Positions 13,013 through 63,387 of a stretch of DNA of 64,000 nucleotides are shown here, one piece after another. The stretch is from Macrostomum lignano. Lineage: Eukaryota. A program made the translations under genes and the position numbers. The stretch spans positions 1 through 64,000 of the forward strand of contig NIVC01002133.1 in the NCBI GenBank assembly GCA_002269645.1, written 5' to 3'. Under the pieces are notes generated by a model, which saw nothing but the letters and a program-made list of their open reading frames with translations, ran no database searches and had not been told where the DNA came from. Within the stretch, counting starts at the first letter, position 1, and every line of letters starts with the position of its first letter.

Positions 13013-13669
13013 ACCCGCACCAGCTGCGGCCTGTCGGGGATTAACTTATTAATTATCGGTTCATAAATTTCCCGTGTTGACCTAAACCATGCCCAGGTAT
13101 GTAGTTGTATTCTATAACTGCTTTTCACATGCCAACTATTGAGAAATTTTAACCCCATGTGTCTTCCTTTTCTTTGTGCACTTCCCAAAACATAAACTTT
13201 ATAAAGTGCATATTATAGTGACAGCTCTGAACCATTCTCAAACATCTTTGATATCGGTAAAAATAAATTAGTGAGCCATCTTAGTTTACTTGAGCCTGCT
13301 TCTTGATTGATGGATGACATTTATGAATTTTGTTCTCTGACGTTTTGCTTCTTATTTTCATGAAGCAGATCTCTTGCTGTAGTTTTTTTGTCCACCATAA
13401 GCAGATTGCCTTCAGCTCCACCGCACTACTTGTAGTAAAAAGTCGAGAGAATGATTTATTATCATCTCTTTGATACCATCAAATTTAGTGCAGGTAAAGC
13501 CGCTTCTCTGAACTTTTTCATCCAATAATATGTAGGCTCACTTTTCAAACTCCATAATAAATTGCGACAATATGTAATATCAATAGTTATTTGACAACAT
13601 ATCTTTAGAACTCAGCTTGAGTTTGCACTTTTACTTCTTTGAAAATGCCAAAATACATGTACACGTATT

Positions 13670-13965
13670 GCGATCCTGCTTTGCCAGAGGCCCAGGTTCG
13701 ATTCCAAGTGCACTCACATTAATTTGGGGCAAAATTGTAATTTCGGCTTGGCTCTGCTCGTGCAATTAACGGCCTTTTAAGGGCCAACCCCCAAGGCACA
13801 GTGAAGTTTACATTCTTAAATAAAGTTAGCGCCGCTGTACACTCCTGTGTGAGTGTGTGCTGTGCGTATGACTGCGTACGTATCCGCACGCTCGTGTGCC
13901 TGCTCAGAGGAGTCGGCGGAATGGGCAGTAATGCCTCTCGCCGGTTGTGTGACAATGTCGCTTAA
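13670..13965 (+). mobile_element. tRNA-derived SINE copy
   Basis: B-box GGTTCGATTCC at about 13696. The body (GGGCCAACCCCCAAGGCACAG...GCCGCTGTACACTCCTGTGTG...GAGTCGGCGGAATG) is shared with copies at 5795, 51372 and 60800. Confidence 0.75.
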
Positions 13966-16575: not shown

Positions 16576-18942
16576 TTGGCTCATTCAGAGGCTGCATCTC
16601 GACAGTCTTTCTATCGTCGCCTCCCGCGCTGCCGCCGTTGCCGCCGACATGCGAGCCGGATCTTCGCTTCTGCATCAGCGAGCTGGCGTAGGCGCCAGGC
16701 CGCCGGCGCCTCTGACTTCTAGTCAGCAGCTCCTCGGCTCGCCGAACTGGCGCCCTGTTCACCGACTCGCTGCTGATGCAGCCGCTAGAGAGGCAAACCA
16801 CGGCGCCGGCGAAGGCCACCCGCTGGCGGAAGGAGGCGACGCAGGCCAAGTAGACCCAGAAGCCGGCCGCAAAGCTGGCGTCCTGCACCGAGTCCAGCAG
16901 CTTGGTCAGCTGGGCCAGGTAGCGGCACCAGCAGCTGTCGCGCGGGTTGCAGACTCCGCAGTTGGCGCGCATCACTATGGCAACGCATAGCGGAGCGGCC
17001 AGCAGGCAGCTGGCCAGAGACAGGGCCAGGTTGGCATAGTAACGGGACAGCTCGATGCGATGCGAGTCCTGCAGGCCGGAGCCCGGTGACGACGTCGGCG
17101 AGAGGAGCTCGCGGCGGCGACGGCGGGCGCGGAGCAGCAGATAGAGCAAGGCAGCGCTGAGGGCCACCTGCGTGGCGACATGGGGAGCAGAAATTGATTT
17201 CACAGGTGATGTAGCAGACAGATACGATTGATCGATAAAGACACCTGGGATTTCCCAGGTGATGGAGCAGACAGATACGACCGATGAATAAAGACACCTG
17301 TGCACCTGGGATTTCCTGGTGAGGAAGCAGACAGATACGATCGATCGATAAAGACACCTGTGCACCTGGATTTTCCAGGTGATGTAGCAGACAGATACGA
17401 TTGATCGATAAATACACCTGTGCACCTGGATTTTCCAGGTGATGTAGCAGACAGATACGATTGATCGATAAAGACACCTGTGATAAAGACACCTGGGATT
17501 TCCCATGTGAGGAGCAGACAGATACGATTGATCGATAAAGACACCTGTGCACCTGGATTTTCCAGGTGATGAAGCAGACAGATACGATTGATCCATAAAG
17601 ACACCTGTGCACCTGGATTTTCCAGGTGATGAAGCAGACAGATACGATTGATCCATAAAGACACCTGTGATAAAGACACCTGGGATTTCCCAGGTGAGGA
17701 AGCAGACAGATACGATTGATCGATAAAGACACCTGTGCACCTGGATTTTCCAGGTGATGAAGCAGACAGATACGATTGATCGATAAAGACACCTGTGCAC
17801 CTGGATTTTCCAGGTGATGAAGCAGACAGATACTATTGATCGATAAAGACACCTGTGCACCTGGATTTTCCAGGTGATGAAGCAGACAGATACGATTGAT
17901 CCATAAAGACACCTGTGATAAAGACACCTGGGATTTCCCAGGTGGTGAAGCAGACAGATACGATCGATCGATAAAGACACCTGTGCACCTGGATTTTCCA
18001 GGTGATGAAGCAGACAGATACTATTGATCGATAAAGACACCTGTGCACCTGGATTTTCCAGGTGATGAAGCAGACAGATACGATTGATCCATAAAGACAC
18101 CTGTGATAAAGACACCTGGGATTTTCCAGGTGATGAAGCAGACAGATACGATCGATCGATAAAGACACCTGTGCACCTGGGATTTTCCAGGTGGGGAAGC
18201 CCACGGACAATTTTCGGCATCTAAATTAATATCTAGCAAGTAGGAGCCCTCTGACCTGCAGACCGAACGGGACCACAAAGATCCCAAAGCCTTTGTAGTA
18301 GATGGCAAAGTTGGCCAGCCTGTTCTCCGTTGTTGCATTGCAGGTCACGTGACAGGTGCGCCACAGGTGCGGCCCTGCCGACTGTCCCGCCGTTGATGCG
18401 CTGTCATTTTGTCGCGAGTGCCACTCCTCGGCGACATCGTAGACGACGGCAGCCGGCGCGTTGAGCGCCAGTCCGGCCACGCAGACGGCCAGCACGGCGC
18501 CGACAGTTTCGCGGACGCAGCCGCGGGCGGCGAAGCGCAGCGGCCTCCAGACGCCCAGAAGCCTGTCGACAGTGAAGGCTAGAAGCAGATGGGCAGACAC
18601 GAATAGAAAGTAGTTCTGCAGGAACTCCAGCAGCTTGCAGCTGGCCACGCTGACCGTGTCGAGCTTCAGCACCGCCCGGCCGGTCGCGTGCATCAGTCCG
18701 CGACCGAGGAAGTCGTCCAGCAGGCCGCTGACCAGCAGAACTCCGGCGTCTGACACGGCCAGTGCCGAGCAATAGATTCCGAATCTGTTCCAGCGGCTGA
18801 GCCGGGCTTCCAGCGTGAATATGATTAGCGTGGCTATGTTGCCAAGGATGCCAGTTACCACTATGATTGGCGTGAAGTAGGCGCGAGTGGCGCCCACAGC
18901 GAAGCGCAGGTCCGCCTCCAGTGGACAGGAACTATTAGACAT
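16556..18942 (-). CDS. Orphan class A (rhodopsin-like) GPCR, peptide-receptor-like, 2 exons
   Basis: Exon 1 is 18942-18256 (CAG|GTCAGA donor) and exon 2 is 17167-16556 (ACGCAG|GTG acceptor, phase 0). TM1 GILGN, TM2 LAVSD, TM3 C..FTVDRLLGVWRPL, TM4-7 present, TGA at 16556-16558. Confidence 0.88.
17200..18195. repeat. About 60-bp composite minisatellite filling the GPCR intron
   Basis: GATGAAGCAGACAGATACGATTGATCGATAAAGACACCTGTGCACCTGGATTTTCCAGGT units. Confidence 0.93.
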
Positions 18943-19663
18943 GTTCTCTGTGCTTTGATTCCACAGTCAGTCTACAGTAGATTGCGCTCGTCAGGCATGT
19001 TCGAGTGCAAAGATTTTGGTTAAATTTGTATTATCGATACAACCTGAATTAAAATAGGTTTCTAGAGTCGAGTAGTGTAGGTAATGTTAAGGTAAGAACG
19101 CTGCTGTTTAAGTTCAATTCAGGACTGCAGATCTCGTACTCAGTAAATTCTACCGTTAGTTTTTGAACTATTATTACTCGCATTAAAAGCCACGCGCACC
19201 TCCTGCTCGGCGTTTATAAATTGGAGCAAACGGGCTTGGGTGGAGTGGAGTGGAAACAAAGAAGGGCCGCCTCGCACCCTTTCTCTTCACTTCTCTCTCT
19301 CTGCACAGCGCGCGCGCGTTCCAAATAGATAGCGCGGCCCACCTTGCCTTTAAAGTCTGGTAAAGCCCAAGCCCAACCCCCGCAGCTCTAACTTAGTCAA
19401 CAAACTGAATGTGCATAACCAGCCCGCCCGTGGTGTACGTTGAAATGTACAGTCACTCTAATGACGTTTAGATCCCCTTATTGGATGAGAGGGGAACTCT
19501 CATCCCCTCCTTATGAAAGTCGTTCTATTATATTTTGGTCTTTATCCGACGCGTTACCTATTCCTTTAATTTCGCATTCTCAAAGTTTGGAATTACCTGA
19601 TTCAGATCAGATCCTCTTATTGAGTACTTTCAATTTCCAATTACATGTACATGTACAACGATT

Positions 19664-21144
19664 CATAGGCGTAGGAACGTTTCAAAATGTGGGGGGGCAG
19701 GCGCACGCCCCCCCCCCGTCGAGTTAGATTTTTTATTTTTTATATGAGAAATGCACATCATCATGTACCGATTCTAAAAATAATCGGTGTTGTCAGCTCA
19801 GCACTCATTTTGGCGCCGCAGGCACTTGTTTTGGCGCCGCAGGCACTCGTTTTGGCGCCGCAGGCACTCGTTTTGGTGCCGCAGGTACTCATTTTGGCGC
19901 CGCAGGCACTCATTTTGGCGCCGCAGGCACTCATTTTAGCGCCGCAGGCACTCATTTTGGCGCCGCAGGCACTCATTTTGGCGCCGCAGGCACTCAGTTT
20001 GGCACCGCAGGCACTCATTTTGGCGCTGCAGGCACTCATTTTGGCGCCGCAGGCACTCATTTTGGCGCCGCAGGCACTCATTTTGGCACCGCAGGCACTC
20101 GTTTTGGCGCCGCAGGCACTCGTTTTGGCGCCGCAGGCACTCATTTTGGCGCCGCAGGCACTCATTTTGGCGCCGCAGGCACTCATTTTGGCGCCGCAGG
20201 CACTCAGTTTGGCACCGCAGGCACTCATTTTGGCGCCGCAGGCACTCATTTTGGCGCCGCAGGCACTCATTTTGGCGCCGCAGGCACTCATTTTGGCGCC
20301 GCAGGCACTCAGTTTGGCACCGCAGGCACTCATTTTGGCGCCGCAGGCACTCATTTTAACGCCGCAAGCACTCATTTTGGCGCCGCAGGCACTCATTTTG
20401 GCGCCGCAGCCACTCGTTTTGGCGCCGCAGGCACTCATTTTGGCGCCGCAGGCACTCATTTTAACGCCGCAGGCACTCATTTTGGCGCCGCAGGCACTCA
20501 TTTTAGCGCCGCAGGCACTCATTTTGGCGCCGCAGGCACTCATTTTGGCGCCGCAGGCACTCATTTTAACGCCGCAGGCACTCATTTTGGCGCCGCAGGC
20601 ACTCATTTTGGCGCCGCAGACACTCATTTTGGCGCCGCAGGCACTCATTTTGGCGCCGCAGGCACTCATTTTGGCGCCGCAGGCACTCATTTTGGCGCTG
20701 CAGGCACTCATTTTGGCGCCGCAGGCACTCATTTTGGCGCCGCAGGCACTCATTTTGGCGCCGCAGGCACTCATTTTAACGCCGCAGGCACTCATTTTAG
20801 CGCCGCAGGCACTCATTTTGGCGCCGCAGCCACTCATTTTGGCGCCGCAGGCACTCATTTTGGCGCCGCAGGCACTCATTTTAACGCCGCAGGCACTCAT
20901 TTTGGCGCCGCAGGCACTCATTTTGGCGCCGCAGGCACTCATTTTGGCGCCGCAGGCACTCATTTTGGCGCCGCAGGCACTCATTTTAACGCCGCAGGCG
21001 CTATGTTTTGTCATCCTGCAGCAAAATGCATTCATGCAAAGCAGAAAAAACCAGAAATAAGAGTAAAAAATAAGCAAAAGTCTACATTTTGCATTTAAAA
21101 AGCGGGGGGCCATGCATGGCATCTCCCCCGTTTCTGCGCCTGTG
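19664..21144. mobile_element. hAT-like non-autonomous DNA transposon carrying an internal 21-bp tandem array
   Basis: Termini CATAGGCGTAG ... CTGCGCCTGTG (imperfect TIR), G-rich and C-rich subterminal tracts, and flanks sharing CAACGAT (imperfect TSD). Confidence 0.6.
19795..21000. repeat. 21-bp minisatellite (CATTTTGGCGCCGCAGGCACT) inside a hAT-like element
   Basis: Dozens of near-identical copies; source of the ALILAPQ and KMSACGA ORFs. Confidence 0.95.
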
Positions 21145-21994: not shown

Positions 21995-24900
21995 TTACTC
22001 GCCCACTGTGATATTGCCGCCATAGATGGCCAGCAGGAGGATGGCGCCGAAGCCCGTGAACAGGCCCAGATTCTGCAACAGGAAGATCTTCGCCCGGCCA
22101 ATTTGCTTTGCCTGAGGCTCCTCCATCGCGCTGTTCACTTCCGGCATCTGTGTTAGAAAAAATGTATAATTTAAGCACGAAAATAAAAAATCATTTTTTT
22201 TTACCAGAATCGCCAGAAAAGAAACGACCCATTCTGCTACTCGCAAAAAGGAAAACCGCAACCAGCAAAGAATTTCCTATTAGAGATTTATGATTCTATC
22301 AGATACCGTAAAGACGCGGCATTTCTCGGGTTGTGCCGCAATCCAATTGGCCTGGCACTCGCTAGCCCAATCCAATTATAGAGTCCTCACCGGAGGTGAT
22401 GTACTCATCTAAAAATAACCCTTCCTTTTCGTACTTTCCAATTCGCTTTTTGGCCCTCGGCCTTGGTTTAGGGGGGTGTACCTGGAGTGAGTGTGATCTC
22501 TGGACTGCAGTGTGACTAAAACGGGACTTGAGCCCCCCGGTCGCACCCGCCCTGCAGGAAAGAATGACCATTCACAAAGGTGTACGGTAGAGCCCAGTAG
22601 CATGCCAGCCCTGAGGCTGAGCCCCGGGTTTAGGGTTCAGGTGCTCCTCCTAATGCTTTTATCCCTTTGTGCTTTTATTAATGTAAGGCCTAATGCCGCT
22701 CCAAAAATCCGGAGTTATGAGCTCTGCCCTCCCCGCCAGGTCCATCTTGCTCTCCTCGGTCCATCTGCTGGCTCCTCTGGAAGTTCCCTGCCCTTGTGTC
22801 TCGGCTCTCATCCTGACAGTGGATTGGAGTCCTGGGGTTGATGTTCGTCCCGAATCGGGGATACCGGCTGAGTCCGGGTCCTCTTGCGCCTTGTGCCCCT
22901 TCCCGACCCCTTGGCCTGGCCTCCAATATTGAGCTGGGAAGGTGACACCCTTGGGCTCGCAGCCCTATAGGTAGACGGTCTTCCTGCCTGATAGGAGGCT
23001 CGCCCTCGGATACAAGCCTCCCAGACTCACTCCAAAATTAAGCCATTTCGTAGACTTTAAGGTTTCCACGCTCTCGGACCGCTTTCAGTAGTATTTCAAA
23101 CATTTTCCAATTCTTTTTTCGCGCACTACCGGGACTTGTCTGCTGGATGGTGGCTTGGGTGGACTCGGTCTTAGCACCGTCCCTGATTCCACTTTTGGGT
23201 TGGCGGTTTCTTAGTTCATAGGTTTGGGTTAGTAGCTTCCCCTGGCCTCGTCGTCAGGGTCCAACCCGGTCTTGCTCGGGCTATATGCCCCTGGTAGATG
23301 TGCCCCCCCCCCACAGCGGCAGAGCCCCTCTCAAGGCTGATCCGCGGCTTGCCCCCGGCTTCCCACCCCGTTTAACAACAACAATTTCCTATAAGAGATT
23401 TTCAAACAATCCCAACCTGTCAAAGAATCCTCACATGCCAAATAATCCAAACTTGTCAGAGATCCCAACCTGTTAGAGATCCCAACCTGTCAGAAATCCC
23501 AACCTGTCAGAGATCCCAACCTGCCTGACATCCCAACCTGTCAGAGATCCCAACCTGTCAGAGATCCCAACCTGTTAGAGATCCCAACCTGTCAGAGATC
23601 CCAACCTGTCAGAGATCCCAACCTGTCAGAAATCCCAACCTGTCAGAGATCCCAACCTGTTAGAGATCCCAACCTGTCAGAAATCCCAACCTGTCAGAGA
23701 TCCCAACCTGCCTGACATCCCAACCTGTCAGAGATCCCAACCTGTCAGAGATCCCAACCTGTTAGAGATCCCAACCTGTCAGAGATCCCAACCTGTTTGA
23801 GATCCCAACCTGTCAGAAACCCCAACCTGTCAGAGATCCCAACCTGTCAGAGATCCCAACCTGTCAGAGATCCCAACCTGTTAGAGATCCCAACCTGTCA
23901 GAAACCCCAACCTGTCAGAGATCCCAACCTGTCGGAGATCCCAACCTGTCAGAGATCCCAACCTGTCAGAGATCCCAACCTGTTTGAGATCCCAACCTGT
24001 CAGAAACCCCAACCTGTCAGAGATCCCAACCTGCCTGACATCCCAACCTGTCAGAGATCCCAACCTGTCAGAAACCCCAACCTGTCAGAGATCCCAACCT
24101 GCCTGACATCCCAACCTGTCAGAAACCCCAACCTGTCAGAGATCCCAACCTGTCAGAGATCCCAACCTGTCAGAGATCCCAACCTGTCAGAGATCCCAAC
24201 CTGTTAGAGATCCCAACCTGTCAGAGATCCCAACCTGTAAGAGATCCAAACCTGTCAGAGATCCCAACCTGCCTGACCCAACCTGCCTGACAGAGATCCA
24301 AATCTATCCAATGATCCCTACCTGTCGGACACCAGAACCCGTCAGAGATCCCAACGCAGCTCACCATGTCCACCAGGCTGATGTACAAGAACATGCCGCT
24401 GGCGACGGCGAAGATCCACACGCTGGCGCCGGTCTCTCCCAGCCAGACGCCCAGCGCAAAGCCCAGGTAGCAGGTGCAGGCGGACAAGAAGTTGCACAGC
24501 AGCGCCATCGGCATGGACATCCCGGCTGACAGCAGGATGGCGAAGTCGCCGAGCTCGTGCGGCAGCTCCTCGCACAGCACCGCCAGGCAGATGCTGACGC
24601 CGCTCAGAGTCGACCGGGTGAAGGCCGCCCCGATGCTCAGGCCGTCGATGAAGTTGTGCAGCGCGTCGCCGAGCAGAATCATCCAGGCCACCGGCTGCAC
24701 CTTTGCCAGCCGGGTGGACACGTCCCTGTTGCTATTAACCATGTCGGTCTGGCTGTAGCAGGCGTCGCTGTTTTCGATTGCTTCTATCGGCAGCACGATG
24801 GCAGCTCCGTTCGCCGCGAGCTCCCCAGTCGGCGAGGAAGGCGCTTTGCTTCTATCCTGATCGGCCGACTCTTGTGGAGTGAAGCAAATCTCGGCCGTTT

Positions 24901-27432
24901 TGAAGTTGGCCAGGCTGGACGAGTCACCGGTGGGTGCCGCCGCTGGCAGTGAGTGCGAGCGCCCATGCCCGATGCCGCCGCCCTGCTCGGGTGTTTTGAA
25001 CGTTGAGGAACTCCATGGTATCTATGATTTCTGTGGTGCACGAACTATGCTATTTGGTGCATGTGAACATGATTTGTAAGGAGCTGGTTCAACGCTTTGG
25101 ACAACACCGTCCCACGCCTGGTGAGGCAATCCTGGTACCCACTCCACCGCCTCGCTCCGCCGCCAGCCCAGAACCGCTGCAACGCGTACTTAGGCACGTA
25201 CGAGCTGCTTCTTTAAACTCATCAACTGTGCTTTCGGGGTAGCCTTTGTGGACGTTATCGAAATTCAAAAATTTCCTGCATGGACTTCAAAAACAATACG
25301 TACCTTCTTTCTGATGAGCTCCTTAAGCATTCTTTCAATGATGAAGAACATGTAGATACCACCAAACACCGCGCAACAGCGCCACAAGTACCACGGATGC
25401 TGCGAGAGGAAGTCCTTCCATGCTGTGTGCCCAGAATTCTCAGCGTGAAACAGATGGTGCTGACGGTCGTCATTGATTAGGCTGGAGTTTGCTTTGTTTA
25501 CTTCCTCGTGCATGAAAGCCAGCTGCAGGCACTGCGGATGTTGAAATTAGCGTGAGAGAATCGTCTTGAGACGTATCAAAAAATGCGAGGGAAGAGGATG
25601 CAATACACAGGACAACAGCAGGGAAAATACTAAAGTCTAATAAGGAATCAGCATCTCTCTGTGCGTTGGTCTCTGAATTGAAAAGCTGACCCGACACAGG
25701 CATTCATCTGATCGCCATTCCCATCCAAGGTTCACTGCCACAGAATTGCGTCGTCATGTCCAACAAGAGAAGCCGCTTCAAAAAAGTAAAAACGCACACG
25801 GAATTTTCTTCATTCAAAGTGCCTTAATTAACTTGACAAACATTTCATTATTTTTTATTTGAACAGTCTCCCCCGACACTGAAACAATGTGAAGCTACAG
25901 TCAGGCTCAAGCAAGCTAACCTCTTACCGAAAAGTAAGTTTTTTTAGAGACAAAATCTCTCCAAGTATTGTGACAGGAAAATTCGCCGCTATCATAATGA
26001 AAGCTGTGTTTACTCTGTGCATTCAATTTGGAGACAATGCTAAATTCCTTATTCATAGTGGGAGCCTTGAGTCTATTGACTCTTCTTACCTGGGTCAATA
26101 TTGTATAGTCTGAGAGCTGCAAGTTTATAAAAATGGATTCAGAAATATTAAACGTACTTGGCCCTTTCAATGCAACAGAACGGTTCGAACGGCAGATGGA
26201 AACTGGAAAACAGAAAAACTTTGTGACGCGATAGAGATGATGCAACACAACAGTATCTTTCTTGCGAAACAGTTGGTGCGCTAAATTCAGCATAGATTGG
26301 AACTAACCACTTTTCATTGAATATTTTTTGAACCCCTGCCACCTTTAACTGTTTCCCGCCGGTGCATATAGCATGCAGAATCTGTTGCCTATTACTTTTA
26401 TCCCTGTCTTGAAGTTGCTCAGTCACAAAAGCTGAATAAACGAGTCAAAGATACCTTGGCGTTGTGACAATTAAGGGTGTCAAAGTTAAGGTGAATACTG
26501 CGCACAACCGATACTTCAGTTGCGACCTCCGCAGTTTATGGAGCTTCAAAAATCAGAAATTAACATTTTTTTCTCATACTAACGCCACTGTAATCCATTT
26601 TTGCACTTTTTACAACAAGCGGCAAAATCCACTACAGATTTTTAATTTTTAACAGCCAGCGCTGCATAAATGGATGCTGGATAGTCTCGATCTTCACCAG
26701 AATCTTCATCAAATAAATCTCTCCTACCAGCATTCTATACACATCCGGCCTCCATCCCCGATTTCCATTTGCAACTCACATCCGGCAGCAGGATGAGCAG
26801 GGAGGTGGCCACGAGAGATCCCACAGCCAGAGACACCATGAACGTCATGAGCAATTTGAAGAACCGCCGGCCCATGAAGGGCAGGAAGATGATGCCCAGC
26901 ACTGCGCAGAGGTTGATGAACGTCACAAACAGCAGGCCGTAGCCCCACACTGCGGGGGTTTGATGAATTTGCTTGTTGATTGGCTTGTGGTTGACTGAGA
27001 AATGCACTATCCACCATCAATTACCGTGTAATCGATTCTGAGCAGTGTGGCCGCCCCCGTGCTCACTATCGTCAGCTGCCACCAGCTGTTGAATATAGCA
27101 GTCCGGAGTTTGAACTCCGCCTAGCAGAGTTGACACCAGGTGAGTGGCGTTGTCCCGCGTCCAGGTGAGGGACTCAATGCTCTGAGACTGGCTGGGACAC
27201 TGCACTCGTCATGGGAAAGGTTTGCACGAATGATCTTAAGTCTCACCTCACTCATTTTTTTCTAATCACTTACTTCCATGACCGACGTTACTCTACTGAG
27301 CAAATTGGAGTTCATGCTGATTGACGCCAGAAATTCAGTCACATTATGGCCATGTACAATGCCATTGCGGCCGTAGAGGCTGATAAACTGTCCTGCCAGG
27401 GTCGAGATAGACTCGCCGGAATCGACCGCTGC
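21995..27432 (-). CDS. SLC39A14: ZIP8/ZIP14-like (LIV-1 subfamily, SLC39) metal transporter, paralog A; signal-peptide exon not found
   Basis: Exons 27432-27274, 27199-27025, 26949-26780, 25531-25304, 25021-24365 and 22147-21995, with consistent phases. [50 protein letters not shown] (EEXPHE signature of ZIP8/14), [11 protein letters not shown]. The symbol denotes the ZIP8/14 clade, not strict orthology. Confidence 0.9.
23455..24300. repeat. 17-bp minisatellite (GAGATCCCAACCTGTCA) in the last intron of ZIP-A
   Basis: Reverse complement of the array at 38480-39300. Confidence 0.95.
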
Positions 27433-27753
27433 CTGAGAGTTTTGTACAGTGGATACTTATAGTATCAAGGCCAGTTTAAAGCAGTGTATTATTTTTCTAG
27501 TGTATTCACAATTAAAGTTCGAAACCACGTCCAAAAATTAAATACATGTAAGCATGTAAGTATTCTGTTGCATGCTATTATCGATCCCGTACAGCAATCC
27601 GACGTCGGTGACGTCGCTAGACGCTCTCGACGTCTACAAAAAATGTGTACCTTTAAATTACATCGACGGTGTAGCGTGTGACGTCGTTATCCGCCGATGT
27701 AATCTAAAAGTTACTTTTTTGACGTTGGATTGCTGCACGGGTATGCTATACTA

Positions 27754-28478
27754 CAGGGTGGTCCAGAAAGGTCTCCCGGACTACAAACAGAGTTTTCTCT
27801 GCACTGGATTGATTGTTTGGGCTGAAACTTGACCTGCTTAAACTTTATTCTTAATAAATTTTTTGTCTAGAAATCTTAGCAATTGCTAAAAAAATCATGA
27901 AGTCACAGCAGTTTTTCTAAAAAAACACCGTTTTCACTTACTGATGTGCACATTTCATTCCAGCTTTATGACTTACACGCCAGTTGAAAGATTTATAATG
28001 GCATCCTGGCTGGATGAATTGAAGAGTCTGCACGCAGTCCTGATCTCAACCCTATGGACTTCTTTGTCTAGGGATGGGTGAAAGACAACGTCTACCGACA
28101 GCCAGTGGACAGCCTGGATGAGCTTAAGGCACGGATAACGCAGGTAATGCAGGATATGCCAGTGGACTTTGCTGTCAACAGCCTTAATAGCTTTAAGAAG
28201 CGCCTGCAGACTTGTATCGACAACCAAGGTCATCATGCATGTGGAGCACTGACTAACAGCTGCATAGCAGATTGTGCTAAAACCCGACTGATTTAACAAA
28301 AAACGATTTTTTAAAGAAAAACTGCTGTAACTTCATGATTTTTTAGCAATCGCTAAGATTTTTAGACAAAAAATATATTCAGAATAAAGTTTAAGCAGGT
28401 CAAGTTTCAGCCCAATCCATCAATCCAGTGCAGAGAAAACTCTGTTTGTAGTCCGGGAGACCTTTCTGGACCACCCTG
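27754..28478 (+). mobile_element. Internally deleted Tc1/mariner-superfamily element with transposase C-terminal remnant
   Basis: TA|CAGGGTGGTCCAGAAAGG ... CCTTTCTGGACCACCCTG|TA, TIRs of about 180 bp. From 28033 the frame reads RSPDLNPMDFFV*GWVKDNVYR (SPDLNP catalytic motif, with TAG at 28069 in place of Trp). Confidence 0.9.
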
Positions 28479-29053
28479 TAGATTAAGTGATTATACGTAG
28501 TTGCTTTCTTCGTGACAAGTCTTTCAATAACTTATTGCATTTTATTCTAAAATTTCACAGCATTCATACATTAAATTGAGATTTTTTTACTTATTAAGGG
28601 ACTTGATTTAGTTTACAAACAAATTAAAACACGTTTTAGAAAGTTTATCCATAGACGCCATACTTGGAAAACATTAATGTACGTGTGTGTACACATCTTT
28701 AAGCCAAGACCATTGCAGGAGTATACTTCGCCTAGGTTGAATTAGAAGCATGTTATTTAATGATCTTACCATCTGAAGTTAGATACACTGAACGTATAAT
28801 TCGAAAGGTAAATTAGAGTATATTCCAATAAGGGAACAATAAATTTGAATTTTGGGTTTGTTTTATATCGAAGCACTAAACTTTAATAAAACAAAGGAAT
28901 TTAATCTTAAAGACATCGAACGAAGTTAGTGATAGTAAAGTATATTTTTAGACGCTCTATTTCAAATTCTTGCAGTATATGCATTCAAGAAAAAAACTAT
29001 TATTGTTTGCTTAAAAACGTACACGTAGCTACATGACGCAACTAGTGTATGTA

Positions 29054-29771
29054 CAGTATTAAAACAAGGACGACTTAAGTAGAAGGACGGGAAACCTCGT
29101 TTCTTAGAAAATTTTTGAAGGCACTTTTTCCCGAAAAAATACACTGCGGAGATAGGAAATTTTCATTTTTCAGCACAAAAATTGCTATAACTTTTGATAG
29201 GAGGCAGATCCAGTGTTGATCTTTTGATATGTTGTGCCTTTTTTATTGCTCTATCGATATTTATAAAGCTTTCCGTTCAGAAAATTAGGATTCTATGTTA
29301 ATTTTTTATTCTACGTATATTTCCTGTATCTAAAAATCACAAAAATGCATGACACAGCTCTAATATTTGATTTTATGAATCTATTTTATCCTCTATGTTA
29401 CGACTATTTGCTATACAGTCAGGTAAGAAGGATAAAATAGACTCATAAAATCAAAGAGCCAAGCCGTGGCATTCTAATGTATTTCAAGCACAAGACACAT
29501 GAAAATATACGTAGAATAAAAAATTAACATAGAATCCTAATTTTCTGAACGGAAAGCTTTATAAATATCGATAGAGCAATAAAAAAGGCACAACATATCA
29601 AAAGATCAACACTGGATCTGCCTCCTATCAAAAGTTATAGCAATTTTTGTGCTGAAAAATGAAAATTTCCTATCTCCGCAGTGTATTTTTTCGGGAAAAA
29701 GTGCCTTCAAAAATTTTCTAAGAAACGAGGTTTCCCGTCCTTCTACTTAAGTCGTCCTTGTATTAAAACTG
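29054..29771. mobile_element. Foldback MITE (Tc1/mariner-type ends), almost entirely palindromic
   Basis: TA|CAGT ... ACTG|TA. Near-perfect inverted arms of about 270 bp (29054-29323 vs 29501-29771) plus an inner inverted pair (29368-29393 vs 29429-29454). Confidence 0.9.
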
Positions 29772-30402
29772 TAACTTTGCACTGTCGGCTATTATTTATT
29801 GCTAGTAATTTAGAGACCATAATTTATTTCGAGTAGGAAGGAAATTAGAAGGTAATGCTACTGGTTATGAAGTTTTATGATAGACTATACAAAAAATGCA
29901 TGCTGTATATTTTCACCTTCGTCCTTCAAGGTCAAAGTAAACTTGTGGTTTAATCTTTTACAGAATACATTTTAACACATGTAATCAATACTGTAACGCG
30001 AAAGCTAGAGAAATATAAAAAAAAACAAAAAATCGGTTGACAAGTGACGTCTGTATTTTGTTTTAATATTTCATATGCGTCCACCACATTCACCGGCGAA
30101 TTTAATTTGTAAGTAAGTAAACATTAATTATTAAGTAAACATATATTATTCGTGTTTTTCGTATTTATTCAGATTACAATATTTGTTGGTAATAATATTA
30201 CTGACTGAAATCATACGGTTGCTTCCTACATTAGTTGAATTGAATGTTTTCAGTATAGAAGAGTAGCTCCAGCAGTAATAGTTTAAAGAGGCACTTCACT
30301 GATTCACTCAGCACATCACGCTACGAGTCTACGACCACGTGGTGTAGGCCTAGGCGTGGGTGTGTCACTGCGTGTGGAGTATCATAGTTGTATAAGTACA
30401 AG

Positions 30403-30594
30403 CAGTGGCGTAGGGAGGGGGGGGATCAGGGGGGATGTATCCCCCCCCCCGAAGAGCCTGACCAAAACTTTTTTGTTGCACTTTTTCGCTATACATGCTA
30501 CCATGTGAGCACTTTTACCTTGGTGTATCCCCCCCCCGTAGGAAATTCACCTTGGTGTATCCCCCCCCGTAGGAAATTCCTGGCTACGCCCCTG
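30403..30594. mobile_element. 192-bp hAT-type MITE
   Basis: CAGTGGCGTAG ... CTACGCCCCTG termini with a perfect 8-bp TSD AGTACAAG (30395-30402, 30595-30602) and an internal direct repeat CCTTGGTGTATCCCCCCCCGTAGGAAATTC. Confidence 0.88.
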
Positions 30595-30984
30595 AGTACA
30601 AGACAATCAGATAAATGGTATGCGCTTAACTAGGATAAAATTATCATTCTATGCATACTTTGTCGAAGTAAAAGTAAAAAAAATTGTGCATTCAACACAG
30701 GACCATATAAATTGAATCATATATTATATATTAAGTCAATATCAAGTCAACAATTAGTTTATTATAAATTGCATTTTAATTAAATTGATGGAAGCATGAG
30801 ACAATAATCTATACAATTGTGGCCTCAGATTTTTTTACTGTGACTGGCTAGTATAGCATTATACTATAGTAAATTTTTAAAAGGCCAGAAAGACAGTCAT
30901 ATCAATTGATAAATTCTGACTCAATTGCCTGTATTTAATAATCAGTTGGAATAAAAGTCGGAATGATATTTAGACTCTTGCAAT

Positions 30985-31351
30985 GGGTCTCCCTAAAACA
31001 TGCCCCACTACACATTATAACATTTTTTGTTAATGCAGTATTTGATTGCAGAGAAAAGTATTTGTTGTAAGAGTAATGGAATAAATAAATTCAATTATCA
31101 TTCTAAATAATAGCATTATTTTCATTTTCTTGTTTCTATTATAAAATTATAGTATTATTATTTTACTAATATTACTATTTATATTGCTTATTATTCACTG
31201 AATTGTATATTTAATAGTAAAAAAACTAAATTCGATACAAACTTAAAGCTTAACAGAGAACTAACTAACTTTGAAATGTCTTCAGTTATAGCCAAATTTG
31301 TTATATTGTATAGTGGTCCAGGGCAGCATGGGACATGTTTTAGGGAGACCC
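30985..31351. mobile_element. 367-bp MITE with GG termini and 8-bp TSD (possibly Merlin- or hAT-like)
   Basis: TIR GGGTCTCCCTAAAACATG ... CATGTTTTAGGGAGACCC with TSD CTTGCAAT at 30977-30984 and 31352-31359. Confidence 0.8.
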
Positions 31352-31670
31352 CTTGCAATGTATTAAATTATCAGTTGGAATAAGAGACAGAGTTGGAATG
31401 ATATTTAGACTCAAATTGCAATGTATTAAAAAATCAGTCAAAATAAGAGTTGGAATGATATTTAGACTCTTGCAATTGTATTTAATAATCATTTGGAATA
31501 AGAATCAGAATATTCTAACTATTATTCTGCCTTGTAATTTAACTGCATTATGAGTCAGAATAGGCCTAATGGTTTTTAATATTCCAAGTTGGACAAAGTT
31601 TAAAAGGTGTTATTTAGGTAAATCTAGTTTATAGCTCAAAGTTTTCTAGGCTTAATGTTGGTATCTTTCA

Positions 31671-31673
<3 letters not shown>

Positions 31674-31722
<49 letters not shown>

Positions 31723-31757
31723 TTCTCTTTCTCTCTCTCTTTTTTTTCTCTCTCTCT
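31674..31757. repeat. (CT)n microsatellite
   Basis: Seen directly. Confidence 0.9.
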
Positions 31758-32540
31758 ACCAATATTGTTCTATGTGAAAGCCTAGTAATTTAATTCATTT
31801 TTGTCTATTAATTTATTAATTATTGACCAGACTGAACCTATTCATTACAATTTTCGATTTGTTTTATTTAAATATATAGAATTGTGGACCATGTGTACTT
31901 TGTACAAGCCTTGAAGATTTTAATATTTGTGTCAAAATGCATTGGCTATAAATTTACTTGTATATTGGTGTTAACATTATTTTTTAGTACTTATTAAATG
32001 AGCATTGTTACCAGATGTCTAGTTATCTTTCCTTAGATAATATTGATGGTAATGGTCATCTGAAAGCTATGGCTATTATAACACTCGATAAAAGCTTATA
32101 GCATTATATAATTTAAGTTTTGTATTGATAGGGTTTAATAGTTTTTATCTTAAAAAAGATTAGACCTTGTCTATATTTTGGTGTCTTTCCTTAAATTTTA
32201 TAATAGGTCATAGCCTCATAGGATATAGCAAATATTATAAAGCAATAAAATATTAGACAATATTATTGCTTGATATTATATTTATTAACTTCTATTTACT
32301 TTTAATTGATAGATAAGATGGTTTTTGTCATTTGATTAAATAGAATTTATTTAGCATTATTATTATAACACATTTATGATTTATATAATTTATTAGATAT
32401 AGTTTTCATTTTTTATGAATTAGTTATAATCTATTTAGGCCTATTATATAGTGATGAATCATAAAAGATAAAAATATGTATATTTATTAAATTTATATTT
32501 CCTTTAAATGAAACTAATGCACCTATATTAAATTGAAATA

Positions 32541-35500
32541 ATGCATGATTCAACAATTATGAATTTTGAAAATTCAACTATAGCTCTAGCTAATAAATTC
32601 ATAGAAATCTATGGCTACAATGGAACTGTCTATGGAAAGAATATTACTGACTTTCTGTCTGGAATCACAATGAGCACTACTATGCTTAGTCGGCTATCAA
32701 TACAAGAACAGGTAAGAACTGAAATAATGAGTATATATGCCAATAAATTTAATTTTTCATTAGTGCAAAAGGTATAGAAAATTTTAGTGATGAAATTTGC
32801 TATAAATGTAATTCTTCCAAAATATGATTTAATTTAAAGTTTTAAATAGTTAGTTACACTTGTATAGCCAGACTATCGCCATCTACTCTACCCTCTCTAC
32901 CCTCCCACAGTGTCCTGTCCAAGTGGACAGTCTTCGGCTGCTGCAATGGACTGAGGCCAATGCCAGCAGTCTGATCTCTACTGTGCTGGGTGGCGTTCAA
33001 ACTCCTGCCTGCTATTCCAGGGCTTCATCAGCTGCTGCCGAGTTTGCAGCCGCCTCTGCCACAGCTGCAGCGCATGACAGGGAAACAAATCCCCTTCATG
33101 GTAATCTCTGACGCCAAAAATCTCTCTTTATAGTCAATATATTTTTGGATCTCAAGTCCACAATTTACGATCCCAAAACCTCTACTCGCTGATCGAAATC
33201 CGAAAATTCGAATTGCCATTGTGATGAAGCTTAAATAATCATTGATCCTAAAAATCCTTGATCTTTATGAAGCTTCTAGAGTCCCTGATCCATCAAAAAT
33301 CCGCCAACTTGATGAAGCTTTAACAATTCCCAAATCGTCGAAAATCCCCCATATTGATGAAGCTTCTAGAATCCTTTATTCCCAAAAAATCCCCCATATT
33401 GATGAAGCTTCCAGATTCCTCTATTCCCAAAAATCCCCCATATTGATGAAGCTTTTGAAGAGTTCGCTTTTTCACACTAGAGAGAGGGAAAGAGAGAGAA
33501 AGAGAAGAGAGAGAGAGAATTATGTATAGTGTCTAAACGCTCGAACTCCCACTTCCAGACCCTAAGCCTGGGAACAAAATTTAGTTATCACTTACTGTTG
33601 CGGGCTCCTCTTCTTTTTTGGGCAGGTTCTCCGAGCTCGTTTCTTCGATTTCTCTTCTTTGTCGCGCGCGTCTGTAGAGCTTGTCTTCGCAGATCTGTTC
33701 CTCCCGGGGTGGTCTTCTTGAAGTCTAGAATCGGCCGAAAGTGAGAGTGTAACAATTAAATCGACGTCGCAGTATTTTCTCTAGTGCAGAATCAATATAT
33801 TCCTCGAGTGCCGAAATCAATATATTCCTCGAGTGCAGAAATCAATATATTCCTCGAGTGCAGAAATCAATATATTCCTCGAGTGCAGAAATCAATATAT
33901 TCCTCGAGTGCCGAAATCAATATATTCCTCGAGTGCCGAAATCAATATATTCCTCGAGTGCCGAAATCAATATATTCCTTGAGTGCCGAAATCAATATAT
34001 TCCTTGAGTGCCGAAATCAATATATTCCTCGAGTGCAGAATTCAATATATTCCTCGAGTGCCGAAATCAATATCAACGATGCGCCCTAATAACAAAATCA
34101 ACTTCTATAACAATACAAGGTCCTCCAGAAAGGGCGTCTTCTTCTAGAACTAACGGAATCGGAGTCGTGTGCTCCTATCGGTTAATCTAGGATAATCCAA
34201 AATCAATCACTTGATAATCCTCTAAGGGTATCGGAATCGGTCCGCAGATCCTATCCAAGCCCTTAGGAAAATGGGAGGCCTCAAATTCAATGAACTCAGC
34301 CAAATCAGCTGATCAGTAACGGCCGGCAATAAAATCGCTCTCAATAATCCAAATAACAAAGGCTCGAACACGGCTTACCGAACGGTATTGATTCCCTCAG
34401 AGATGTAGCCTCGCTTAGCTGCTCCAGCAAGCTTTGAGATCTTTGGTGGCTGCTCCGAGTCTGGGATTTCAGCTCGGATTTTGATTTGTATTTATAGGCA
34501 AGTTTTCATTATATCAATAGTAACGTGATTCATTTTTCATCATAAGTTTTACGATAAATCATCTTTCATCATAAGTCGCAACATGATTCATATTTCATAA
34601 GTCGTAAAATGATTAATCTTTTATCAAAGTTTTGCTACCCATGTTTACGTTAGTCTACTTACAGTAGTTTTTTATGAATAATGGTGCTCTACACTTCCAG
34701 AATCCTCTATTCTCAAAATTTCCCCATACTGATGAAGGTTCAAGGATCCTTTATTCCGAAAAAATCCCCCATATTCACGAAGCTTCCAGAATCCTCTATT
34801 CTCAAAAATCTCCCATATTGATGAAGCTTCCAGAATCCTTTATTCCCATCTTGGTGACGCTTCAGGAATCACCGATCCCCAAAATATTTCCATCCTGCTA
34901 AAATTCTGTATTACTCAACAACCAAGTGCCGTAGAATCATCCACCATATTTATGAAGCCTTAAATCCCTGTGGCCTTTTATTATCATACCGATCTTAATA
35001 TTCATGAAATCGTTTGCTACGCGATGCCACACCCGCAGTGTGGGGCTACGGCCTGCTGTTTGTGACGCTCATCAACCTCTGCGCAGTGCTGGGCATCATC
35101 TTCCTGCCCTTCATGGGCCGGCAGTTCTACAAACTACTCATGACGTTTATGGTGTCTCTGGCTGTGGGATCTCTCGTGGCCACCTCCCTGCTCATCCTGC
35201 TGCCGGATGTGAGTTAGGGATATTGGGCTGGGCTGAGGGGGAGATGGGAAAGAGGAGACTGGGCTGAGAGGGAGATGGGGAAGAGGAGACTGGGCTGAAG
35301 GGGAGATGGGGAAGAGGAGACTGGGCTGAGAGGGAGATGGGGAAGAGGAGACTGGGCTGAAGGGGAGATGGGGAAGAGGAGACTGGGCTGAGGGGGAGAT
35401 GGGGAAGAGGAGACTGGGCTGAGGGGGAGATGGGGAAGAGGAGACTGGGCTGAAGGGGAGATGGGGAAGAGGAGACTGGGCAGAAGGGGAGATGGGGAAG

Positions 35501-38500
35501 AGGAGACTGGGCTGAAGGGGAGATGGGGAAGAGGAGACTGGGCTGAAGGGGAGATGGGGAAGAGGAGACTGGGCTGAAGGGGAGATGGGGAAGAGGAGAC
35601 TGGGCTGAGGGAAGATGGTTATTAAATGGGGTCAGGACTAAAAAGTCTCATAAGTCTAAGGAGACAGCGAGAGGATGATAAATATGACAATGAAAATCCA
35701 GCTGCAACTTTAATCAGCCATGCTCACCCACCTGATGCACTGCAGTCTCTTCAGTTGGCCTTCATCCACGAGGAAGTGAACTTTGCCAACTTCAGCCTGG
35801 TGGAAGAGCACCACCACCACCTGTTCCGGGCAGAGCGGCCCAGCCACGCCACCTGGGAGGATTTTCACTCTCAGCATCCCTGGTACCTGTGGCGCTGTTG
35901 CGTGGTGTTCTTGGGTATCTACCTGTTCTTCTTGATTGAACGGCTGCTCAAAGAGCTCATCAGGTGGAAGGTGAGGGCTAAGGGTTGTCTTGGGAGGGAA
36001 TTTATTCCCCTTGCAGGTACCCACTGACCCTCACTGTGGATATCAGATCCCTGAGTATATTAGATCCCTAAGTGTATCAGATCCCTGAATATATCAAATC
36101 CCTGAGGATGTATCAGATCCCTGAATATATCAGATCCCTGAGGATGTATCAGATCCCTGAATATATCAGATCCCTGAGGATGTATCAGATCCCTGAATAT
36201 ATCAGATCCCTGAGGATGTATCAGATCCCTGAGGATGTATCAGATCCCTGAGTATATTAGATCCCTAAGTGTATTAGATCCCTGAGTGTATCAGATCCCT
36301 GAGTTTATAAAATCCCTGAGTATATCAGATCCCTGAATATATCAGATCCCTGAGGATTTATCAGATCCCTGAGGATGTATCAGATCCCTGAGGATGTATC
36401 AGATCCCTGAGTGTATCAGATCCCTGAGTGTATCAGATCCCTGAGGATGTATCAGATCCCTGAGGATTTATCAGATCCCTAAGGATGTATCAGGTCCCTG
36501 AGGATTTATCAGATCCCTGAGTATGTATAAGGTCCCTGAGGATGTATCAGGTCCCTGAGGATGTATCACATCCCTGAGTGTATCAGATACCTGATTATAT
36601 CAGATCTCTGAGGATATTGGATCCTTCAGTATGTATTTTTAAAAACCAATTAATTTGTTGCTATACTTCTCAAAGTATGCAATTTTTCAATAATAATTCA
36701 GCCGGCAATATGCAACTGTTCCATTAAGCGATTATCAACCACTTGTATCAAGCCTCTATAATTATTTGTTGATATTCAATCGAACCTTAGCAACCGGTTG
36801 CCACGGACGCCACTGGCGCAGCTGCCGCCGCCTCCGCAAAGCATCAGCACAGTCACCAGCAGTCCAGGGAGCGACTCCCGTCCTGCAGCATGAACATCGA
36901 GCGGAAGCCGACTCGCTCTGACAAGCAGATACGATACGCCAGGCCCGACGGCAGCCGCGGCTGCGCGCGCTGCGGCAACGACGACTTCGACAACGCCTTC
37001 GCCGAGGAGTCGACGCCGAAGCTGGTTCTGGAAGTCGAGGCGGCGATGCTGCCTAAGACGGTTTGTGTCTCCGGGTTGTTTGAATGAGCGGCTGTTTTGG
37101 TTTCTGAGGCTGCGGGGATCCTGATCTCCCCTGGCTGTGGGATCTTGGGAGTCATAGGCTGGGATTTTGAGATTCATAGGCTAGGATCTTGGGAGTCATA
37201 GGCTGGGATTTTGAGATTCATAGGCTGGGATCTTGGGAGTCATAGGCTGGGATTTTGAGATTCATAGGCTGGGATCTTGGGAGTCATAGGCTGGGATTTT
37301 GAGATTCATAGGCTGGGATCTTGGGAGTCATAGGCTGGGATTTTGAGATTCATAGGCTGGGATCTTGGGAGTCATAGGCTGGGATTTTGAGATTCATAGG
37401 CTGGGATCTTGGGAGTCATAGGCTGGGATTGTGAGATTCATAGGCTGGGATCTTGGGAGTCATAGGCTGGGATTTTGAGATTCATAGGCTGGGATCTTGG
37501 GAGTCAGAGGTTTTAATTTTGGGAGTCATAGACTGGGATCTTGGGAGTCATAAGCTGGGATCTCGGGAGTCATAGGCTGGTATTGCGGGAATCATAGGCT
37601 GGGATTTCGGGAATCATAAGCTGGGATTTTTAGAGTCGTAGGTTCGGATTTTGTTACACGTAGTCATAGGCTGGGATCTTGGGACTTGATATCACCACTA
37701 TCTTTTCCCATTTGTACACTTTGCAACTGGAACCATTTTTGCTCAATAAAAACTGATTAATAAATTACAGATTCATAAATACAGCAAAGCAAAATGCAGG
37801 TAACAATATGCTCATACTATATTTATAACGGACAGTTTAGTAATTTTCTGCTTTCGCGTCCTACTTCCCGCTCTGCTTATTCTAACGGACCATTTTCTAA
37901 GAAACCCTACCTACGCCCGCCGTCCAGGGCGGCCAGGTCGGCAGTTCGCAGCCGGACACGGTGGCTCCCTCGAGCGCCGCGGCGTCAGGTGACCACAGCG
38001 TCAGCCTGGCGACAAACTGCAGCGCCAAGGCTCGCCCGGCCGACGCCGCCACCGCCGCAGTTGCCGATGAAAAGAAGCTGACAAGGAACGGCGGCCTCTG
38101 CGACGACCGCGACGGCGTGTCAACCCGGCTGGCGAAGGTGCAGCCGGTGGCCTGGATGATTCTGCTCGGCGACGCGCTGCACAACTTCATCGACGGCCTG
38201 AGCATCGGGGCGGCCTTCACCCGGTCGACTCTGAGCGGCGTCAGCATCTGCCTGGCGGTGCTGTGCGAGGAGCTGCCGCACGAGCTCGGCGACTTCGCCA
38301 TCCTGCTGTCAGCCGGGATGTCCATGCCGATGGCGCTGCTGTGCAACTTCTTGTCCGCCTGCACCTGCTACCTGGGCTTTGCGCTGGGCGTCTGGCTGGG
38401 AGAGACCGGCGCCAGCGTGTGGATCTTCGCCGTCGCCAGCGGCATGTTCTTGTACATCAGCCTGGTGGACATGGTGAGCTGCGTTGGGATCTCTGACGGG

Positions 38501-39566
38501 TTCTGGTGTCCGACAGGTAGGGATCATTGGATAGATTGGGATCTCTGTCAGGCAGGTTGGGTCAGGCAGGTTGGGATCTCTGACAGGTTTGGATCTCTTA
38601 CAGGTTGGGATCTCTAACGGTTTGGGATCTCTGACAGGTTGGGATCTCTAACGGTTTGGGATCTCTAACGGTTTGGGATCTCTGACAGGTTGGGATCTCT
38701 GACGGTTTGGGATCTCTGACGGTTTGGGATCTCTAAAAGGTTGGGATCTCTAACAGGTTGGGATCTCTGACGGTTGGGATCTTTAACAGGTTGGGATCTC
38801 CGACAGGTTGGGATCTCTAACAGGTTGGGATCTCCGACAGGTTAGGATCTCTAAAAGGTTGGGATCTCTAACAGGTTGGGATCTCTAACAGGTTGGGATC
38901 TCTGACGGTTTGGGATCTCTGACAGGTTGGGATCTCTAACGGTTTGGGATCTCTGACAGGTTGGGATCTCTAACGGTTTGGGATCTCTAACGGTTTGGGA
39001 TCTCTGACAGGTTGGGATCTCTGACGGTTTGGGATCTCTGACGGTTTGGGATCTCTGACGGTTTGGGATCTCTAAAAGGTTGGGATCTCTAACAGGTTGG
39101 GATCTCTGACGGTTGGGATCTTTAACAGGTTGGGATCTCCGACAGGTTAGGATCTCTAACAGGTTGGGATCTCTAACGGTTTGGGATCTCTAACGGTTTG
39201 GGATCTCTGACAGGTTGGGATCTCCGACAGGTTGGGATCTCTGACAGGTTGGGATCTCCGACTCTTGGGTATTATGGGGAAGGTTTGGATTCTCTGACAG
39301 GTTCAGGTTGGGATTATTTTACAGGGTAGGATGTTGGGTCAGATCGCAGCCATAACTTGGCATGGACTCTGAGAGTGAATCGCGAATTCCCTCGCCCCAT
39401 TTCCCTCCAGATGCCGGAGGTCAGCTACTCGATGGAGGAGCCTGGGGCCAAGCAGCTGGGCAAGGCGAAGATCTTCCTGCTGCAGAATGTCGGCCTGTTC
39501 GCCGGCTTCGGCGCAGTGCTGACGCTGGCCATCTACGGCGGCAACATTCAGCTTGGCGGAGAGTGA
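32541..39566 (+). CDS. SLC39A14: ZIP8/ZIP14-like (LIV-1 subfamily, SLC39) metal transporter, paralog B; start uncertain
   Basis: Exons 32541-32710, 32911-33100, 35039-35208, 35746-35970, 36791-37060, 37928-38473 and 39411-39566. Same motifs as paralog A, with an extra exon in the His-containing cytoplasmic loop (KHQHSHQQ). Confidence 0.88.
33780..34075. repeat. 25-bp minisatellite (AATCAATATATTCCTCGAGTGCAGA)
   Basis: About 11 copies in ZIP-B intron 2. Confidence 0.92.
35225..35612. repeat. 31-bp purine-rich minisatellite (GGGCTGAAGGGGAGATGGGGAAGAGGAGACT)
   Basis: Fills ZIP-B intron 3. Confidence 0.92.
36040..36610. repeat. 17/19-bp minisatellite (ATCAGATCCCTGAGGATGT)
   Basis: ZIP-B intron 4. 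Confidence 0.92.
37120..37680. repeat. 22-bp dimeric minisatellite (GGCTGGGATCTTGGGAGTCATA / GGCTGGGATTTTGAGATTCATA)
   Basis: Alternating A/B units in ZIP-B intron 5. Confidence 0.92.
38480..39300. repeat. 17-bp minisatellite (GTTGGGATCTCTGACAG) in the last intron of ZIP-B
   Basis: Same family as 23455-24300, opposite orientation. Confidence 0.95.

Positions 39567-43191: not shown

Positions 43192-63387
<20,196 letters not shown>

Follow-up and report, generated by a model that had tools for sequence, protein, structure and literature searches.

In the 64,000-nucleotide (nt) stretch of the Macrostomum lignano genome analysed here (assembly GCA_002269645.1, contig NIVC01002133.1, positions 1 to 64,000 of the forward strand; hereafter the window) we observed two intact ZIP8/ZIP14-like transporter genes, arranged head-to-head and divergently transcribed: copy A on the minus strand (arm A) and copy B on the plus strand (arm B). 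To judge from comparison of the arms, the pair probably goes back to an ancient inverted duplication that was partly re-homogenised by interlocus gene conversion. Since two non-contiguous tracts of low divergence and of clearly different age (3.5% and 0.2%) stand in a saturated background, we infer at least two independent conversion events, the second very recent. The tracts are as follows (TM, transmembrane helix; dS, synonymous divergence).

24223-24703, minus strand: putative recent conversion tract of arm A; 339 nt of the core exon (TM4-TM7, with HNFIDG and EELPHELGD) and 142 nt of intron, 480/481 against arm B
38135-38615, plus strand: putative recent conversion tract of arm B, partner of the arm A tract, from the repeat search and blastn
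26780-26949, minus strand: putative older conversion tract of arm A, the TM1-2 exon; 6/170 mismatches, dS 0.068 against 1.26 in the next exon
35039-35208, plus strand: putative older conversion tract of arm B, partner of the arm A TM1-2 exon

The near-identical tract

Direct alignment of the reverse complement of 24223-24703 with 38135-38615, both 481 nt long, gave 480 matching bases, as in the initial annotation of this DNA, which had described a 481-bp inverted tract with one mismatch. The sole mismatch is at offset 403, where copy B has G (38538) and copy A has T (24300) on the sense strand. The exon part of the tract (339 nt, 38135-38473, encoding KVQPVAWM...LVDM) shows zero differences between the copies; in the intron part (142 nt, 38474-38615) 141 of the 142 bases are the same. 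Both lengths had been given correctly; the intron part, however, does not consist of unique intron leading into a minisatellite, as had been thought, but of degenerate proximal units of that minisatellite.

The tract is contained in a wider block of 663 nt with 95% identity, detected by a repeat search (24060-24722 and 38116-38778). To the left of the tract 19 more bases align, up to 38116/24722, with two synonymous mismatches (at 38122 and 38134), and further leftward the arms match at chance level. The left edge of the tract falls inside the exon, at the switch from unalignable loop-coding sequence to identity. On the right, looser homology continues to ~38778/24060, while the edge of the tract coincides with unit 9 of a 17-bp array, where variants private to each copy start.

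Aligned with the bacterial ZIP structure 5TSA (BbZIP), the core exon corresponds to residues 163-289, the helices of the metal site. In the same alignment the tract covers the HNxxEG and (Q/E)DxPEG-type motifs of TM4 and TM5, so the metal-binding core does lie within it, as had been proposed.

A mosaic of divergence between the arms

The values of dS were determined for each exon by the Nei-Gojobori method and are given below with the GC content of third codon positions (GC3).

Ectodomain exon 1: dS 1.73; GC3 0.60 in A, 0.30 in B
Ectodomain exon 2: dS ~3.2 (saturated); GC3 0.60 in A, 0.47 in B
TM1-2 exon: dS 0.068 (3 synonymous and 3 non-synonymous differences); GC3 0.85 in A, 0.82 in B
TM3 exon: dS 1.26; GC3 0.66 in A, 0.82 in B
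Core exon: dS 0.022 (two synonymous differences, both to the left of the perfect tract); GC3 0.95 in both
Last exon: dS 0.68; GC3 0.82 in A, 0.88 in B

Among the ~90 synonymous sites of the core exon only 2 differ, while in the neighbouring exons the proportion of synonymous differences (pS) is 0.45-0.74. Uniform identity over all exons, which would have spoken against conversion, is contradicted by this range of dS, from 0.022 to 3.2.

In blastn comparison of arm to arm, matches were confined to four exons and the minisatellite, the rest of the intron sequence being unalignable; identity was 96.3% in the TM1-2 exon, 73.5% in the TM3 exon and 80.7% in the last exon. A recount of the TM1-2 exon (35039-35208 against 26949-26780) returned the six mismatches in 170 nt reported earlier, i.e. 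3.5% divergence, and its homology stops no more than ~10 nt from both splice sites. Outside the two tracts, divergence of the other exons is 19-48%. The last exon, previously put at about 75% identity, has 77-81% at the nucleotide level; the ectodomain exons, previously put at about 38% in protein, have 47% amino acid identity over aligned columns and less if gaps are counted; the loop-coding parts of A and B gave no significant alignment, in agreement with the earlier description of the cytoplasmic loops.

The inverted duplication is old: three exons have dS values above 1, and apart from the tract and the array common to both copies no intron sequence can be aligned. The initial annotation had argued for an old inverted duplication with patchy arm-to-arm conversion, and both parts of that argument hold: there are two separate low-divergence tracts, the younger of which takes in synonymous sites and intron sequence. 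Amino acid identity between A and B is 69-76% in two unconverted exons (TM3 and last), while homologues from other species reach at most 53% (TM3) and at most 60% (last exon) against the same exons. The copies are thus closer to each other than to any other species, which indicates a lineage-specific duplication, though one that is old at silent sites.

The significance of the identical run was assessed by a GENECONV-type permutation test (1194 aligned coding sites, 242 mismatches, 20000 shuffles), a check that the initial annotation had called for along with per-exon dS. The longest identical run was 347 sites, against a permutation maximum of 77, and none of the 20000 shuffles reached the observed value. 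For third codon positions taken separately the run was 115 against a maximum of 43, again with 0/20000. Chance is excluded as the source of the identical run.

We saw no larger palindrome: in comparison of the window with itself (blastn) and of open reading frames with the arms (tblastn), inverted homology was confined to the ZIP exons and the array, save for an unrelated element of ~300 bp. It appears from this that the duplication was gene-sized, or that its older flanks have decayed.

The 17-bp minisatellite at the right-hand edge

The intron that follows the core exon carries homologous arrays in the two copies, delimited by Tandem Repeats Finder (TRF), pattern search and unit maps.

23409-24355, minus strand: 17-bp minisatellite in the copy A intron after the core exon, ~55 units, sense unit ATCTCTGACAGGTTGGG
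38483-39262, plus strand: homologous 17-bp minisatellite in the same intron of copy B, ~46 units

According to TRF the arrays start at 38483/24355, ~10 nt past the exon; the array of copy A fills the proximal part of its intron. Pattern search across the 64 kb found the 17-bp unit nowhere else.

For comparison of units the arrays were laid out in rows of 17 nt, starting at the splice donor. Rows 1-8 hold degenerate units, each specific to its position, and these are the same in both copies bar one mismatch; from row 9 the arrays diverge by unit type. Perfect identity ends at intron offset ~136-142, where the regular 17-bp units begin. Three unit types, ATCTCTGACAGGTTGGG, ATCTCTAACAGGTTGGG and ATCTCCGACAGGTTGGG, are common to both arrays; GTTTCTGACAGGTTGGG, ATGTCAGGCAGGTTGGG and ATTTCTGACAGGTTGGG are private to A, while ATCTCTAACGGTTTGGG, ATCTCTGACGGTTTGGG and others are private to B. 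Alignment of the distal unit order scored -28; shuffled maps averaged -27.7, and an equal or higher score was reached in 1332 of 2000 of them. Given the private variants and the lack of a common unit order past the proximal eight units, no exchange of units between the arrays was detectable.

The array thus marks the right-hand end of the recent tract, and the arrays themselves are not homogenised. The earlier suggestion that the shared minisatellite may anchor the exchange is speculative: the minisatellite bounds the tract, but in so far as anchoring would imply homogenisation between the arms it is contradicted, as past eight units the variants are private and their order is at shuffle level. 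For the same reason we dropped the whole array as a candidate part of the tract.

The copy B array contains an internal higher-order duplication (38629-39262, with the unit string PEPPEQQRFST occurring twice), and the copy A array differs in periodicity; such a difference of internal structure indicates that the arrays turn over independently.

A 7-mer, GGGATCT/AGATCCC, was present in 5 of the 32 array consensus units of the window, compared with ~0.2 expected by chance. The arrays carrying it are at 10245-12122, 23409-24355, 36041-36615, 37138-37684 and 38483-39262; as the homologous pair is included, they represent four independent arrays. The 7-mer may represent a core motif that the minisatellites of this genome share, or else a trace of their common origin.

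A possible course of the conversion events

Non-reciprocal homologous repair between the arms would re-homogenise segments of the two genes, with each tract limited by the homology still usable. The bounds of the TM1-2 tract would then be the splice sites, near which it stops, since intron sequence cannot be aligned; the recent tract would be bounded on the left by the junction of fast-evolving loop-coding sequence with TM4, and on the right by the place where the two arrays lose register. Conserved exons may be the only places still able to form heteroduplex. Such a process would be self-reinforcing: conversion keeps exons similar, and similarity permits the next conversion. Homology-limited, self-reinforcing conversion explains the homogenisation of the transport site without selection for identity, and conversion confined to segments with enough remaining homology is a simpler reading than an adaptive one.

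As for the trigger of the recent event, the most economical proposal is that in one copy the unstable 17-bp array suffered a break or stalled a fork, and that synthesis-dependent strand annealing, with the other copy as template, repaired it without crossover; had there been a crossover, the 13.4-kb spacer would have been inverted. Such a lesion would be a plausible trigger, with a likeness to the classical gamma-globin case discussed below.

An adaptive version, close to the initial proposal of one pore with two regulatory modules, would have recurrent conversion, started by breaks in the 17-bp array, retained by selection, with an identical metal-translocation core kept in two divergently regulated transporters while their ectodomains and loops specialise ('shared pore, separate regulatory modules'). 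We consider this version rather unlikely.

The composition of the exons is compatible with GC-biased conversion: GC3 is high in the converted exons (0.95 and 0.82-0.85), against 0.30-0.88 elsewhere. Several considerations weigh against re-homogenisation by conversion, or at least reduce the force of the argument for it. The GC3 argument is only suggestive, since the last exon, though unconverted, has a high GC3 too; the evidence comes from a single haplotype sequence; and, as 38.6% of the window is tandem repeat, errors of assembly or polishing are a realistic concern.

Alternative explanations

The only serious alternative to conversion is an artefact of assembly or polishing, in which the core exon of one copy took on, at consensus level, the sequence of reads that came from the other copy or a homeologue, so that a merely similar tract would pass for an identical one. 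The genome of M. lignano is difficult, and its chromosomes were recently duplicated; the high content of tandem repeats also speaks for an artefact, as does the length of the tract, roughly that of a fragment in short-read sequencing, and look-up found no independent contig for either copy. Still, copy-specific sequence is present on both flanks of the tract, and one mismatch persists inside it. There is also a sharp step within an exon from unalignable sequence to identity, which polishing cannot make from sequence diverged like the other exons. The second tract, the TM1-2 exon with 96.5% identity, is at a level of divergence that polishing would not yield, and the two arrays keep register in their proximal units but have private distal units. 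The mosaic fits real biology better, and we regard an artefact as unlikely.

Less probable again is template switching during replication between the inverted arms, where a fork stalled at the minisatellite would restart by a microhomology- or homology-mediated route, instead of meiotic or mitotic repair of a double-strand break. The geometry of the locus suits such an event: no more than 13.4 kb separates the inverted arms, one end of the tract is in an array likely to stall forks, and the sense strand of the array is G-rich (GC skew of +0.17 and -0.18 in the two arms). On the other hand, we saw neither junction microhomologies nor insertions nor a rearranged spacer, and the product would be the same as that of break repair, so that the two cannot be separated by sequence.

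It is hardly credible that there was no exchange and that the identity was kept by purifying selection, whether its target was codon usage, the metal-binding core or a non-coding element within the tract: no part of the protein is more conserved than that encoded by the tract (identity to other phyla reaches 73%), and a GC3 of 0.95 suggests strong codon or composition bias, but the 2 differences in ~90 synonymous sites both lie outside the tract in an exon whose neighbours have the pS values given above, the 141 of 142 identical intron bases are minisatellite units, no third-position shuffle attained the observed run and no Rfam family is present in 21-41 kb, and the identity at silent sites and in the intron effectively refutes this reading. 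An intronic non-coding RNA was considered separately as a cause of the intron identity and was rejected, as the same 21-41 kb gave no Rfam match at gathering thresholds.

Gene models of the two copies

Gene models were built from tblastn matches of homologues, translations of reading frames and inspection of splice sites. The splice junctions are GT-AG throughout, and the resulting open frames are 510 aa (copy A) and 560 aa (copy B).

21995-27432, minus strand: ZIP copy A (ZIP8/14-like), six exons, from tblastn of homologues, frame translations, GT-AG junctions and Pfam Zip
27432-27274, minus strand: copy A exon 1
27199-27025, minus strand: copy A exon 2
26949-26780, minus strand: copy A exon 3 (TM1-2)
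25522-25304, minus strand: copy A exon 4 (TM3)
~25021-24365, minus strand: copy A exon 5 (loop and TM4-7), acceptor uncertain
22147-21995, minus strand: copy A exon 6 (TM8 and stop)
27433-32540, no strand: intergenic spacer, ~5 kb, AT-rich (32-35% GC), from the composition profile
32541-39566, plus strand: ZIP copy B, seven exons, from the match to UniProt A0A1I8IZ58, GT-AG junctions and Pfam Zip
32577 (or ATG at 32541)-32711, plus strand: copy B exon 1
32911-33100, plus strand: copy B exon 2
35039-35208, plus strand: copy B exon 3 (TM1-2)
35755-35970, plus strand: copy B exon 4 (TM3)
36791-37060, plus strand: copy B exon 5 (loop)
37928-38473, plus strand: copy B exon 6 (loop and TM4-7)
39411-39566, plus strand: copy B exon 7 (TM8 and stop)

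Both products match Pfam Zip (PF02535) over profile positions 2-323 of 323, with E-values of 2.8e-61 for copy A and 3.7e-62 for copy B. HNFIDG and EELPHELGD can be read from the translations of both copies. The hallmark of the ZIP8/ZIP14 branch of the LIV-1 subfamily of ZIP (SLC39) transporters is HNxxDG in TM4 together with a metalloprotease-like motif in TM5 whose first His is replaced by Glu (EEXPHEXGD). In protein searches with the conserved exons the best matches were annotated as ZIP14-like or ZIP8, in molluscs, echinoderms, arthropods and vertebrates. The ectodomain exons have conserved Cys residues and N-glycosylation sequons. A scan of the 5-kb spacer for hydrophobic open reading frames produced nothing convincing as a start or signal-peptide exon for either copy; the promoters of the two genes, and any first exons still missing, presumably lie in this spacer.

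The top match was UniProt A0A1I8IZ58 ('S39AE', Macrostomum lignano), which tblastn places on copy B at ~100% identity (36797-37018, 37929-38494 and 39411-39563), a match that identifies the DNA as M. lignano. Among the best 120 matches listed there were no M. lignano proteins other than this partial model of copy B, and exact-protein look-up returned no independent contig carrying it. Relative to the simplest GT-AG model, A0A1I8IZ58 shifts frame twice in the region of the cytoplasmic loop (37020-37109 and 37929-38036), and its N-terminal half is absent; an automated mis-prediction seems likely.

The introns of copy B are almost entirely minisatellite, with arrays of a 31-bp unit (35228-35618), a 17/36-bp unit (36041-36615), a 44-bp unit (37138-37684) and the 17-bp unit described above (38483-39262).

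Comparison with known systems

The flatworm pair has in common with the metal cation symporters SLC39A8 (ZIP8) and SLC39A14 (ZIP14) the Pfam Zip domain, HNFIDG in TM4 and EELPHELGD with Glu for the first His in TM5; unlike the vertebrate pair, it arose by a separate, lineage-specific duplication. In vertebrates ZIP8 and ZIP14 are unlinked, and they are not known to undergo conversion.

Opposite-orientation paralogs with exon-scale conversion include human RHD/RHCE and Drosophila hsp70Aa/Ab, where, as here, inverted neighbours swap short segments without crossover and become mosaic genes. Those cases rest on population data, while ours is a single haplotype sequence. For Drosophila, ectopic conversion has been the subject of a review (PMC3924832). 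A tract ending in a repeat also has a precedent: Slightom, Blechl and Smithies reportedly described in 1980 a conversion between the human G-gamma and A-gamma globin genes bounded by (TG)n in IVS2, which they are said to have proposed as a hot spot. In both systems a conversion tract between duplicated genes halts at a simple or tandem repeat in an intron; however, the globin genes are arranged as direct repeats, the tract there ends at a dinucleotide repeat, and allelic comparisons are part of the evidence there.

In Caenorhabditis, conversion is known between adjacent paralogs, both inverted (the hsp16 modules, hsp70-7/hsp70-8) and tandem (col-12/col-13, act-1/act-3), with tracts of hundreds of bp that can reach into introns (PMC3966223). 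The likeness is in near-identical segments set in diverged flanks of neighbouring paralogs, some of them head-to-head. Our case differs in that the genes are flatworm ZIP transporters, that two internal segments and not the whole open reading frame were apparently converted, and that one tract end is in a minisatellite. Our literature search found no paper tying M. lignano or ZIP genes to gene conversion: the phenomenon is well known in general, while the gene family and the organism are new.

Other features of the window

The tandem repeats detected by TRF in the 64 kb include 32 distinct arrays of at least 150 nt with a period of at least 8. A 3.3-kb purine-rich array at 55797-59108, with a 30/60-bp unit and an 11-bp sub-period, is extremely asymmetric between the strands (GC skew of +0.84). 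A 21-bp minisatellite of 57 units (19801-20999) accounts for two spurious open frames, one per strand, of 457 and 469 aa.

Directly downstream of ZIP copy B, and transcribed toward it, is a large gene for a voltage-gated cation channel, with exons on the minus strand at 43195-44466, 52435-52893 and 60269-60799 (three Pfam Ion_trans domains, GPHH and an SCN5A-like IQ motif). An open frame at 18229-18966 (minus strand) has a domain of the rhodopsin family of seven-transmembrane receptors (Pfam 7tm_1, E-value 1.7e-10). The inverted pair at 13620-13932 and 51366-51678 (~300 bp, ~79% identity) has no relation to the ZIP genes and probably represents a dispersed repeat. A candidate remnant of a mariner-like transposase at 28078-28296 had no Pfam match and is not claimed.

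Consequences for the ZIP paralogs and the genome

Existing knowledge of gene conversion and of ZIP transporters is unchanged by these observations; they offer a clean and well-delimited case of partial concerted evolution in a flatworm model organism. Trees and dS dating of these ZIP paralogs would be misled unless the converted tracts are masked, and the same probably applies to other M. lignano duplicates. Short reads from the core or TM1-2 exons, as well as RNA interference triggers, in situ probes and CRISPR guides directed to these exons, would hit both genes; copy-specific reagents should be taken from the TM3 exon, the loop or the last exon. Finally, a tract that ends in a minisatellite offers a convenient natural system in which to ask whether ectopic repair in M. 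lignano is seeded by tandem arrays, which account for 39% of the window.

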